DNA from: Basidiobolus meristosporus CBS 931.73
Lineage: Eukaryota; Fungi; Basidiobolomycota
Direction: 5' to 3'
DNA: 64,000 nucleotides
Assembly: GCA_002104905.1 (NCBI GenBank)
Contig: MCFE01000170.1
Span: 79,868-143,867, forward strand
The notes beneath the pieces were generated by a model. The model made no database searches and was not told the DNA's origin. It saw only the letters and a program-made list of their open reading frames with translations. Positions 39,031 to 43,001 of this stretch are shown here, in pieces; the first letter of the stretch is position 1, and each line of letters opens with the position of its first letter. Made by a program: the position numbers and the translations under genes.

Positions 39031-39601
39031 TTTCGCCAACACAGACCAGAGGGCAAGGGTAAATATAAAGCGGACACAAATCGCAAAATCACATTCTAGA
39101 CGGAAGGCCACTTCAAAGTCAGCCAAAATTCAATCCTCTCCAATCCTATTGGCCGACCCAGCCTTCCACAAGAAGCTTAAAATGTCCTGGAACACCGCGA
39201 TCCGACAATTAGTTTTAATTGGATTTCCTAGTTGGAGGGGTGTGCAACTATTGTACTGCTGCCAGATTGCCATGCAATAAACGGATGCGCGATCCCTGGC
39301 CCCAACTGGAGGACCCGCCGAACCGTGCATCCGACCAGGCGCACGCCAACCGTCAAAGGAAAACGATATGCGAAAAAGCATGGTTTATTTGCCTGTCAGA
39401 ATTAAAGATTTGAAGTATTTAGTGAAACATGCTGACAATTTCGCTGGGATCATGTTGGATCTGAACAGATTTGCCTAAGCATATACTGAATTACTAGGGG
39501 AGCTGAGCAATAATGTACATACTATAAATAGCATTGAACCGAATGAAATTAAATAAAAGAAACTCCGGAGGAGGTGCAGGTATCAAGGAAATCCCATCAA
39601 C

Positions 39602-40849
39602 TTAGCTCAAGTGGTATAAGACGAGGGCCACTAAAACAAGTAAATAAAATGAGCCATTGACAATTGCGGACACAGGCTTATTGTGCGACAAAAGTTTAAG
39701 TTGAACGAACCAGTTGTTGTCATTCTGGATGGCATTGGTCTTGTTGGAAAGAATCTCCTCCAAGTATTGCTCTGACTGGATGACCTTCTTGAAGCGACCC
39801 GACTCTATGCTCCAGTCCAAGTTGCCTCTGCACCATGCCTCGAAGGTCACGATGTACCTGCCAAGGGCATGGTATACCTCAGGAGAGTAGTTGTGGGAAA
39901 CCAACTTCTCGAACTCCGCCTTGGTGGCAAAGAAGTTGTCCATCTCCTGGTTCACCATCTGCCGCACCTGCTCGACCGACTCGTCGAAGGTGATGTCCCT
40001 GGCCTGCTTGAGAACCATGACCAGATTGTGGATGTCTCCCTTCTCGTACTCCTTCTCGAACGAGTATATGTCGTTCACCCAGCACACGACGTTGATGCAC
40101 TGGTCCTTCAGGGTGTTGAACTGGGGGCTGGACAGGATCTCTTCGGGGAGATAGACCCCTTCCACGTATCCGATCACCTCCAGACACAGTCTCATACTGC
40201 CAGAGTCCTGGCGGTTCTTGATGTAGGTCTCGACATCGGGGTATCTAGTGACCTGGCGCATCTCGCACTCGAAAATGTAGGCGTTCAGGTAGTTCACAAA
40301 GTTGGCGGTCACCTTTTCCTGGACCTCTATGCTGGTAGCTCGACTCAGCTCCGCCCAAAGCTCGGCCAAGGAGCAGTAAATGGGGGAGTGTTGAATTTGT
40401 TTAATCTCCGCGTTGCAAATCGCAGATAAACTCATCTCCTCCGAATATTCCTCCGGGCGGTCGTCCTTCAGAAGGGCCATGACATTTTGGGTGAATTCAG
40501 CGGTATACTTTTTGGTGACTTTGGTGTTGAATATACTAAGCAAAGCTATAAATATTATATACATCTGGGTCTTATCTTGACCGAGTTTACTGTCGTCGAA
40601 CTGATCGTCAAACATAAACAGCCAAGCGTAAAGCTTGGCAACCCACAACAAACGATCGTACTTGGCGGTCGGGTGCACCCGACATGCCAGATTTGTTAAT
40701 TTTGACTGGACGAGGCGTTCCACAGCATCCTTCCCCTGCACTAGCTGTTTCTGTGTCAACCAAAGAAGTGTATCGCTCTCAATTTTCTTGTAATCATGAC
40801 ACAATGAGGTGGGAGGGAGAAAATCGAAAGGTGGGAGGGTTATCTTCAT
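39602..40849 (-). CDS. Class I terpene synthase, intronless, with C-terminal hydrophobic tail (upstream in-frame ATG at 40969 possible)
   Basis: DDQFD (DDxxD), RQDSG effector R, VNDIYSFEKE (NSE/DTE), WSIESGRF (WxxxxxRY-like); tail FYLLVLVALVLYHLS. Confidence 0.95.
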   Translation of the reverse strand: MKITLPPFDFLPPTSLCHDYKKIESDTLLWLTQKQLVQGKDAVERLVQSKLTNLACRVHPTAKYDRLLWVAKLYAWLFMFDDQFDDSKLGQDKTQMYIIFIALLSIFNTKVTKKYTAEFTQNVMALLKDDRPEEYSEEMSLSAICNAEIKQIQHSPIYCSLAELWAELSRATSIEVQEKVTANFVNYLNAYIFECEMRQVTRYPDVETYIKNRQDSGSMRLCLEVIGYVEGVYLPEEILSSPQFNTLKDQCINVVCWVNDIYSFEKEYEKGDIHNLVMVLKQARDITFDESVEQVRQMVNQEMDNFFATKAEFEKLVSHNYSPEVYHALGRYIVTFEAWCRGNLDWSIESGRFKKVIQSEQYLEEILSNKTNAIQNDNNWFVQLKLLSHNKPVSAIVNGSFYLLVLVALVLYHLS

Positions 40850-43001
40850 TAGGGATAGATTTTTAAGCAAGAGGCATTCCTTGACCACCCAACGTTTATA
40901 TAGCCATCTGGGTGCCCAGATATCTTTATTCCGTTCAAAAGCATCACGAAACAAATTAGTCCATTGCAAAAAATCAGTCCCGATTCAACCTCATCAGAAG
41001 CCATCTAATTCAAGGAAATGCTGCAATGTCAACCGACCATATCGAATAGAAGCGCTTGATTAGAGAGATGGCATTCGCTTGTGGTGGCATTCCAATGTCT
41101 GGTCAACACCAAATGGCAATGAAAACCTCACGGCCAGCAAATGGCCAGTATCTGCCCATCTGCCAAATGGAATCGAGTTCCGGAGCCAGATTTGTCTGTT
41201 CTATTTGGAACCCACTTGCCAAAACCATCGAAGTCTAGCACTCTCCATCGCCATGATATTCTATCCAACAACAGGCGGCGCCTGGACAGCGAATTGAATC
41301 GCCGCACAAATCGAACAATCCTCAAACCACGCATTGCATCAGGCATGTGGAGTTAAATCCAACGTTGAGGTCAGAAAAGCTCTAGAAGGCCATCATACGT
41401 GTAAACAATTACCACGCCTGTCCGAGTCCCTAGTAGCATTACCTGATTGGAAGGTGGGGTGCCGGTAAACATCTGGAAAAGATCTGAATCTGATTGAGGC
41501 ATGTCCAGCATTATTATGGCAATGGCGAGAAAATCCAGTGGCACGGTGTGCTGGCGAAGCGCGCTGGGTCTAATGCGTAGGTTTAGGATTAAAGCAAGCG
41601 CTGTGCTTCTTTTGGACACGCGGCAGCCAGGCGATTGGCTACCATCCTTCAGGGTATTGCGATTGTTTTATATCTATTCCATAGTTGGCGACCATGGAAC
41701 AATGGGAAGAGCAGTTTAGGCGTATCACCCTGAAGAGCAACCCGTGGATTTTCCTGGATTTGCTCCAAGATGCCGTTGCTATCGCTTCTAGATTGTTGGC
41801 AAAGCCGTGATGCCCAGATCTGACTGGAAAGAAAGCCGAGTGTTGCCATGGAATTAAAGATTAGGGTGCAACCATTCCCGCCTCACGCAACAATGGGCAT
41901 GACGGGCGGTAATTTAAGTAATGGCTCACGGAACAGGGAAATGCTTCAAAGCCTCAACCAGCCTTAATAATTCGACTTTCCAAATGCGATGCTGATGCCG
42001 GAAGCATGAGTCTCTTTTCAACGGGCTTATAACGAAGGCTTGAACTATGCCCCTGTTTTGTTAAGGTTATGTCCCTTTTGCCACCAGTGGCATTCCCTAA
42101 TCTGATGACACTGTGATGTTGTACACTTCACATGTGCATGATTTGCATGCGGCTAAACTCTATGCCTGAAATCGAAATAATCCAGATTCTTACCTGATGA
42201 AATCTGGCGAAATTGAAATCGAGAGTTCGAAATCTCAACATCTGTACCAAGGATGCGGGTAATATTCGACCTGGACGGTGGCCTGGTAATGTACCAAAGC
42301 CATCCTCGAGCGTTGGTAATAACTCACGTCTGAACCCACACCTGGTATGCTGCAACAGTCTCTGAGCGGGAGTTTGCTGTTGCGTCACAAGAGATATGCG
42401 TCCTACGTGGCATGTGGGTTGATTACCAGGGTCGTGTAGCATGTAGATCGTCACGAACAGCGCCTATACTACTTTGGTTAGCTTGGTGTATTGAGCTCGG
42501 CCAATTCGGCCCCAACCCTCAAAAACCGATCTAGTCCGATCCGGCGGGCCTGGTGCACCCACGGACCGGCGAATTTGACTAATCCGTTGATGAATAATAC
42601 GAGCTCAAAATGATGTGCCAGTAGCGAAGCCCCGTAATAGCCCGCCCTATTAGCAGTCCGAGCATGATTGAAAGTCGTTGAGATACGAGACTAATTGGTT
42701 TGATAGGGATTTCGAATTTGCGTGATCCATGTTTAAAGGGAATTTCCGGGTTTGAGGTCTTTACTTAGCAACATATAGCAAGTCCCTGGCTTAAGCCACT
42801 GCTCTATACTCATGATTATACTATCAAACTCTTCAAATCGACAGTATGCAGCAAACCAAGCTGTACTCAAATTATGTTTTGATCATATAAAGATTGAGCG
42901 ATACTGCTGAAAACCAGATTGAATCCATTTGTAGTAAGCTTTTGAAGCAGCAGGGTTAAAGAGCCCTCGGTGATTTTAAATACTTCTTGACCTTCCACAC
43001 G

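Follow-up and report, generated by a model that had tools for sequence, protein, structure and literature searches.

A bacterial-type terpene cyclase of Basidiobolus with a folded insert and a predicted C-terminal tail anchor

Class I terpene cyclases of bacterial affinity have been described from the fungal genus Basidiobolus, and here we analyse a gene that is very probably one of them, encoded on the reverse strand of a 64,000-nt stretch of Basidiobolus meristosporus CBS 931.73 (GCA_002104905.1, contig MCFE01000170.1, positions 79,868 to 143,867; hereafter the window), with emphasis on two segments of its product, an internal insert and a C-terminal extension. The Basidiobolus cyclases of Tabima et al. 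2020 (PMC7466969) number two per genome, show bacterial affinity and are reported as expressed; where that paper deals with them it treats them as tree tips and candidates for horizontal gene transfer (HGT), and those passages mention no insert, extension or anchor. Bacterial sesquiterpene synthases, both solved (9hqd, 9hq2) and from Ktedonobacteraceae (L001, L002, P0004), have the same fold as the window's cyclase (template modelling (TM) score 0.87–0.90), the same layout of the DDxxD motif, the second metal-binding (NSE) motif and the sensor Arg, and a similar N terminus; they are only 23–36% identical to it, measure 305–345 aa, and carry neither the insert nor the extension. Squalene synthase (Erg9/FDFT1) has a class I isoprenoid-synthase fold, uses farnesyl diphosphate and sits on the cytosolic face of the endoplasmic reticulum (ER) through a single C-terminal transmembrane helix. 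This topology is the one that we propose for the Basidiobolus cyclase, although squalene synthase comes from another family, performs a head-to-head condensation instead of a cyclisation and is no close sequence relative.

The transfer of the gene is already published (Tabima et al. 2020, PMC7466969) and hence is not new, so the value of this locus lies in the later changes: judging from the sequence comparisons, the new element would be a conserved, selected, eukaryote-style tail anchor together with a folded insert, both gained after transfer. We consider it likely that the gene encodes a functional class I metal-dependent terpene cyclase, that a Basidiobolus ancestor acquired it from bacteria and that one of the two resulting subfamilies bears a tail anchor. 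A search of the literature found no natural tail-anchored class I terpene cyclase described.

Predicted tail anchor and helical insert

An earlier sequence-only reading of the window had noted a C-terminal extension of ~60 aa with a hydrophobic end and almost no following tail, and measurement agrees: the extension (Table 1) comprises 59 aa, terminates in VSAIVNGSFYLLVLVALVLYHLS and leaves 1–4 residues after the hydrophobic stretch. The 19-mer at residues 393–411 has a mean Kyte–Doolittle hydropathy of 2.32 and is the sole segment of the protein above 1.6, the next-best 19-mer (1.26) being a core helix that aligns with the bacterial relatives. By hydropathy (no dedicated predictor was used) there is no signal peptide and no second transmembrane segment, and the polar N terminus aligns colinearly with those of the bacteria. 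In the AlphaFold2 model, the extension consists of a loop, a helix at residues 376–389, a hinge at residues 393–398 with a predicted local distance difference test (pLDDT) below 50, and a terminal helix spanning residues 399–414 of 415, which stands apart from the core, undocked, on a flexible linker.

To gauge selection, the gene was compared with its counterpart in B. ranarum (63% identical). Since the same two-pore K+ channel gene lies immediately downstream of the cyclase in both the window and B. ranarum, the two are syntenic orthologues. A more distant paralogue subfamily (subfamily B) is present in B. ranarum as well, in two near-identical copies (P0003 and P0036, ~40% identity). The B. 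ranarum tail has the same architecture and stop position as that of the window, with a Kyte–Doolittle value of 2.04; the two tails are 48% identical, and their differences exchange one hydrophobic residue for another. Basic residues occur solely on the N-terminal side of the helix (K, K and H in the window; R, K and K in B. ranarum), and no charge comes afterwards. Purifying selection acts on the extension, where the proportion of nonsynonymous differences (pN) is 0.28 against a synonymous proportion (pS) of 0.69 (Fisher p 5.8e-6; one in-frame codon indel), and also on the 25 terminal codons that make up the transmembrane segment (pN 0.26, pS 0.72, p 6.8e-4). When the observed number of substitutions was placed at random in simulation, the frame remained open in 8.5% of trials and was both open and of hydropathy at least 2.0 in 0.8%. 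On this substitution pattern, the extension is genuine coding sequence, translated and kept by selection. The in-silico hydropathy, the conservation in the orthologue, the synonymous excess and the separate modelled helix all agree with the earlier description of the tail as a transmembrane-like helix, and by sequence criteria the C-terminal segment is probably a tail anchor, from which we infer membrane insertion and the compartment. Tail-anchored proteins obey established rules, by which a short uncharged tail after a hydrophobic helix favours the ER over mitochondria or peroxisomes; since the present helix is of this hydrophobic kind and is followed by no charge, the ER would be the likeliest target membrane.

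A hydrophobic C-terminal end is rare in the family, being found in 4 of the 272 relatives compared, two of which are the window's gene and its B. ranarum orthologue and two of which are bacterial; subfamily B of Basidiobolus has no hydrophobic tail. Bacterial members of the same synthase family (P0088, P0106 and P0055, a third case that is weaker than the other two being included) carry a low-complexity linker and then a C-terminal hydrophobic helix, but in these proteins an Arg/Lys run follows the helix, in the manner of a bacterial sorting or anchor signal, and such a run is absent from the Basidiobolus cyclase. As all three lie elsewhere in the tree, C-terminal membrane segments appear to have arisen independently within the family. 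P0088 is named “MYXO-CTERM domain-containing protein” by JGI, and P0106 and P0088 each follow a response-regulator and histidine-kinase pair on bacterial contigs (loci L085:4001-5236 and L086:2460-3638); for a class I cyclase of bacteria, sorting to a membrane or anchoring in one seems in itself unusual.

Several points weigh against a true anchor. The transmembrane prediction was made from hydropathy scales only, at a Kyte–Doolittle threshold of 1.6; on the Hessa scale the segment sums to a borderline ~0 kcal/mol; the hydrophobic helix contains Asn, Gly and Ser, and its B. ranarum counterpart three Gly; and the subfamily-B paralogues work without a hydrophobic tail. With membrane residence of the tail read from sequence and model, these points would also fit a genuine cyclase of bacterial descent whose hydrophobic end acts instead as a dimerisation or self-packing helix, as a lipid-droplet or peroxisome targeting element, or as a degradation signal. 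We regard this alternative as unlikely, given that the hydropathy of both orthologues exceeds the threshold, that hydrophobic-for-hydrophobic exchange amid sequence divergence is the pattern of a lipid-facing helix, unlike that of a specific protein interface, and that the terminal helix is left undocked behind a disordered hinge with no charge after it. A tail anchor thus remains our preferred reading of the extension.

The second added segment lies past the helix that follows the DDxxD motif. Where the sequence-only reading had counted an extra ~35 aa, the insert measures about 39 aa relative to all bacterial relatives, and its length differs by copy (~39 aa in the window, six fewer in the B. 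ranarum orthologue, and about 35 more in subfamily B, there with a basic stretch). AlphaFold2 builds it as two helices, at residues 110–130 and 138–153, with pLDDT of 77–97 and mostly above 90. Between the orthologues, residues 106–154 have a pN of 0.39 and a pS of 0.81 (Fisher p 7.7e-5), so that constraint on the insert is looser than on the core, yet follows the pattern of coding sequence. Because the orthologue keeps the frame and shows this synonymous excess, the insert is, on comparative grounds, genuine coding sequence and not an unspliced intron. An in-frame intron was also sought by reading positions 40400–40600 for GT...AG intervals and was rejected, as the 45- and 55-nt candidates shift the frame or hit a stop and the 27-nt candidate is too short. 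In the two subfamily-B copies (L084:6001-7275), the longer insert includes a basic RRRSSAW... stretch, and a short basic C-terminal end replaces the tail; P0003 is intronless and lies among fungal genes, including Zn-cluster/Fungal_trans and TRAM_LAG1 genes.

Bacterial ancestry of the cyclase gene

Beyond Basidiobolus, a word-based search returned only bacterial or metagenomic proteins (22–36% identity, Ktedonobacteraceae at the top). When each prokaryotic species was scanned through a single genome, 162 relatives emerged, led by those from Ktedonobacteraceae, Tengunoibacter, Chitinophaga, Streptomyces, Sorangium and others, and the GTDB loci of relatives were bacterial in 80 of 80 cases. Because the claim of HGT depends on the lack of closer fungal relatives, an exhaustive HMMER search was made over 1.84 billion cluster representatives, of which 2645 were retained at E<=1e-3 and 38 at E<=1e-30. 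The best 150 of these 2645 all score above 100 bits, and every labelled one is from Basidiobolus or bacterial. A eukaryotic origin was considered for an unlabelled clade of 37 rows in the tree and was rejected, its members being Actinomycetota or sharing a tight operon with genes for a P450 and a methyltransferase.

In our trees, which were built from Basidiobolus and bacterial sequences, the four Basidiobolus proteins form one clade (support 100/100) on a stem of 1.13 substitutions per site, placed among Chloroflexota-rich bacterial clades. The similarity search and phylogeny thus bear out a bacterial source, and they correct the likeness to actinobacterial or cyanobacterial cyclases that had been read from the motifs, the labelled bacterial relatives being 25–36% identical and those of Ktedonobacteria (Chloroflexota) and Chitinophaga the nearest. 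FastTree placed a metagenome-assembled genome (MAG) of Ktedonobacteraceae as sister to Basidiobolus with support of 93; since mixture-model IQ-TREE failed to uphold this sister (support only 14/77), we rejected it as a named donor and propose none. In the published tree of 401 Dikarya and 395 bacterial cyclases, six Basidiobolus genes, two per genome, fall into a “Bacteria II + Basidiobolus” clade (Tabima et al. 2020, PMC7466969). The two subfamilies in B. ranarum match the two bacterial-like genes per Basidiobolus genome. The same source, in a general statement on the bacterial-like genes, gives the six genes an expression comparable to that of housekeeping genes (PMC7466969). The window's cyclase resides among eukaryotic genes (INSIG, PDH E1-alpha, K+ channel and PPR) in conserved synteny. 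The relatives, the resident fungal locus and the published tree, which includes Dikarya, together support bacterial ancestry by horizontal transfer, in keeping with what had been proposed from the sequence. Composition adds no signal in either direction: GC content at third codon positions (GC3) is 0.69 in the cyclase gene, resembling its PPR (0.67) and PDH (0.61) neighbours and therefore uninformative about HGT, and composition was likewise uninformative for Basidiobolus genes in the part of the published work that treats it (Tabima et al. 2020, PMC7466969).

Vertical inheritance from an old fungal cyclase shared with Dikarya would require that the bacterial appearance result from rate differences or from loss in other early fungi. 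The Dikarya sesquiterpene synthases (Cop4, 8gr5; Copu9, 7ofl; BcBOT2, 8h6q) belong to the same Pfam family and have the same fold and a similar size, and the solved fungal enzymes come close behind the bacterial ones (AcCop4 at 91–98 bits against 120–144), which speaks against a clean bacterial placement. So do three further facts: Dikarya clusters (Basidiomycota and Ascomycota) headed the ranking when the ESM Atlas was searched with a language model, the long stem gives the clade no firm attachment point, and, our trees covering Basidiobolus and bacterial sequences, exclusion from the fungal cyclases rests on the score ranking and the published tree. According to the ESM Atlas tool itself, such rows are no evidence about transfer. 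In addition, three Zoopagomycota genes were recovered, as “clade 2”, in a survey of fungal cyclases by hidden Markov model (HMM) (PMC10210940). Nevertheless, we judge vertical inheritance distinctly improbable. Scores above 100 bits are reached by no fewer than 150 cluster representatives, and the labelled ones beyond Basidiobolus are all bacterial. Solved bacterial enzymes outscore the fungal ones by 20–45 bits, whether the query is the single sequence (AcCop4 91 bits, best bacterial solved chain 120) or the Basidiobolus profile (fungal chains 75–98 bits, with AcCop4 and Copu9 at 96–98; bacterial chains 101–144). Furthermore, the published tree groups the Basidiobolus genes with bacteria, and the family is reported there from no other non-Dikarya fungus (PMC7466969).

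Gene model, catalytic core and probable chemistry

The window's program-made listing of open reading frames (ORFs) contains an uninterrupted frame at 39602-40969 (-), which the sequence-only reading had taken as the gene. The frame is indeed open throughout, but the start at its upstream end is not that of the protein: the first ATG, at 40849, yields a 415-aa product beginning MKITLPP, identical to the deposited gene model P0001 on MCFE01000170.1 (GCA_002104905.1). This N terminus aligns residue-for-residue with those of bacterial relatives, with which, as with the B. ranarum orthologue, the protein is colinear, and nucleotide conservation relative to B. ranarum falls upstream of the ATG. Because the relatives and the orthologue begin at the MKI position, the protein starts at ATG 40849 and not at TTG 40969; the TTG start was rejected as an artefact of the listing, given the N-terminal alignment and the deposited 415-aa model. 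The deposited B. ranarum model K7432_011947 (L081:5001-5300) is 480 aa long, a predicted intron adding ~65 N-terminal residues, and alignment with the window and bacteria suggests that its true start is the internal MKIAIRD. Across the whole gene, omega relative to the orthologue is ~0.11.

That the tail, the insert or both are annotation artefacts (an unspliced intron or read-through) missing from the mature protein is very improbable: the gene model as examined here does rest on genomic sequence, the insert starts in an AT-rich patch, and GC3 of insert and extension is 0.59 against 0.83 in the core. In B. ranarum, however, the two segments stay in frame and in the same length class, all indels being in-frame and the stop unmoved. 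The synonymous excess is significant for each of them, the model gives the insert two confident helices, and an independent paralogue subfamily carries an even longer in-frame insert. Reading through the sequence also brought up no in-frame GT...AG interval with a length plausible for an intron.

Membership in the terpene synthase family is clear from the match to Pfam PF19086 (Terpene_syn_C_2; 6.6e-42, 144 bits against a cut-off of 23.7, profile positions 1–198 of 199), and the complete set of class I motifs reported earlier is indeed present, with DDQFDD, NDIYSFEKE and GDIHNLVMVL all found. The NSE triad (N,D)Dxx(S,T)xxxE is represented by N259, S263 and E267. The helix-break Gly, G217, is invariant alongside R213 in the alignment with relatives, and the diphosphate-sensor role assigned to R213 follows established knowledge of bacterial class I synthases. 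One feature counts against an entirely canonical active site, in that the RY pair reads RF in the window's cyclase; RF recurs in the B. ranarum orthologue and, among Ktedonobacteraceae, in P0004 and P0005, and paralogue P0003 has RY. The AlphaFold2 model, computed from an 82-sequence alignment, shows an all-helical alpha-domain fold (mean pLDDT 91.3, predicted TM score 0.88). Its best Foldseek match is T-muurolol synthase of Roseiflexus castenholzii (9hqd, target TM score 0.90), with 1-epi-cubenol synthase of Nonomuraea (9hq2) at 0.87; fungal Cop4, Copu9 and BcBOT2 rank behind the bacterial enzymes at 0.79–0.84, and one of the top structural matches is a Streptomyces diterpene synthase.

The chemistry is less sharply indicated. 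None of the NCBIfam equivalogs (isoafricanol, delta-cadinene, 4-epi-cubebol and others) scored above its cut-off, the best being isoafricanol synthase at 156 bits against 500 and the rest likewise falling far short, so that no product name can be transferred. Most of the characterised enzymes nearest to the cyclase make sesquiterpenes of the cadalane type (T-muurolol, epi-cubenol, epi-cubebol and delta-cadinene), and the fungal HMM survey placed its three Zoopagomycota cyclases in the class performing 1,10-cyclisation of nerolidyl diphosphate (NPP) (PMC10210940). From these relationships we infer substrate and product as follows: a sesquiterpene synthase acting on farnesyl diphosphate is our best guess, a C15 substrate being somewhat better than an even bet, and any given product skeleton has a much smaller chance. 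A search of the literature found no terpenoid linked to the genus Basidiobolus. Among the metagenome relatives, P0037, P0040 and P0047 are giant proteins of 1542–1647 aa with four to seven separate cyclase-domain matches each, and they recur in many contigs. A few members of this group are named germacradienol/geosmin synthase; known geosmin synthase has two domains, a number that these three proteins exceed.

Table 1 Features of the terpene cyclase locus in the window
Feature	Position in window	Strand	Remarks
Upstream in-frame stretch, outside the protein	40850..40969	-	TTG start, 40 spurious codons, no ATG
Terpene synthase coding sequence	39602..40849	-	415 aa; no intron in the ORF; stop at 39602-39604
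First metal-binding motif DDQFDD, residues 81-86	40592..40609	-	D81, D82 and D85 at least 90% conserved in 82 relatives
Insert of ~39 aa, residues ~109-148	40406..40525	-	Past the helix following DDxxD; in all Basidiobolus copies and no bacterial relative
Arg213, presumed diphosphate-sensor Arg	40211..40213	-	46 residues upstream of NSE; invariant or at least 90% conserved across alignments
Second metal-binding (NSE) motif NDIYSFEKE, residues 259-267	40049..40075	-	N259, D260, S263, K266 and E267 90-100% conserved
Arg352-Phe353 at the RY-pair position	39791..39796	-	R352 at least 90% conserved; Tyr replaced by Phe
C-terminal extension of 59 aa, residues 357-415	39605..39781	-	Past the last core helix; bacterial relatives end near YLExIL
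Juxtamembrane helix, residues 376-389, NNWFVQLKLLSHNK	39683..39724	-	AlphaFold2 pLDDT ~60; Trp and Lys kept in orthologue
Predicted tail-anchor transmembrane segment, residues ~393-413	39611..39673	-	Hydropathy, AlphaFold2 and selection
Conserved ~190-nt block 3' of the stop	39374..39565	-	Ends at AATAAA

Genomic context and proposed role

The annotated neighbours of the cyclase encode INSIG, PDH E1-alpha, the two-pore K+ channel, a PPR protein, a 358-aa orphan, a rhodanese and a pyridine-nucleotide oxidoreductase, with a Rap-GAP gene and a fungal transcription factor beyond them. No P450, methyltransferase or prenyltransferase gene occurs among the annotated neighbours within about 10 kb, so the earlier description of the cyclase as stand-alone, with no adjacent tailoring genes, holds. 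The accompanying claim that it is an intronless gene among intron-rich neighbours fails, because 4 of the 8 genes annotated close by lack introns: across the surrounding 21 kb, PDH E1-alpha, PPR, the 358-aa orphan and the terpene synthase have no introns, and introns occur only in the K+ channel, rhodanese and Pyr_redox genes. Among native Basidiobolus genes, 36% are given as intronless (Tabima et al. 2020, PMC7466969). An INSIG-family gene, whose products sense sterols in the ER and regulate the mevalonate pathway, lies from window position ~50527 onward (L087:1-323), ~10 kb away and beyond PDH E1-alpha; its nearness to the cyclase is probably a coincidence.

Downstream of the stop codon, the 3' block of Table 1 is 72–85% identical to B. 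ranarum in 40-nt windows, compared with 5–45% in the remaining spacer and with saturated synonymous sites in the gene itself. A search of Rfam found no match to the block, and a structured RNA was rejected as its explanation (folding z-score 0.13, Rfam empty). Going by this conservation, it is probably a strongly constrained 3' untranslated region (3'UTR) of the cyclase gene, or a regulatory block.

Taken as a mechanism, these features would suggest that an ancestor of Basidiobolus acquired the cyclase gene from bacteria and that the gene then duplicated into two subfamilies, both with the helical insert after the DDxxD region. The window's subfamily, with the B. ranarum orthologue, would additionally bear the tail anchor, in which a flexible linker leads into a short amphipathic helix of basic character and a hydrophobic helix of ~20 residues closes the protein. 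The cyclase would be synthesised on free ribosomes and its C-terminal helix inserted post-translationally, most likely into the ER, with the catalytic domain oriented to the cytosol. There, a Mg2+ cluster held in DDQFDD and NDIYSFEKE would ionise the prenyl diphosphate, and the hydrophobic cyclic product might be released at the membrane surface, where squalene synthase and P450s also sit. In its fullest form, which we put forward tentatively and with rather less than even confidence, one transferred copy has evolved a true tail anchor and works on the cytosolic ER face beside squalene synthase and P450s, as the first natural tail-anchored class I cyclase, and its 3'UTR may contribute to regulation or targeting.

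A membrane anchor is unusual for class I terpene cyclases, and in this case the fungal host has seemingly equipped a soluble bacterial enzyme with an anchor in the membrane as well as a folded insert, selection having kept the two across deeply diverged species. If this reading is true, the locus would clearly exemplify how an enzyme transferred from bacteria is fitted to the architecture of eukaryotic cells. Artificial tethering of terpene synthases to the ER or lipid droplets is practised in metabolic engineering; a naturally tethered cyclase would show evolution reaching the engineers' solution, and would supply a ready-made anchor module as well as a tractable system for studying how transferred genes adapt to compartmentalised cells.

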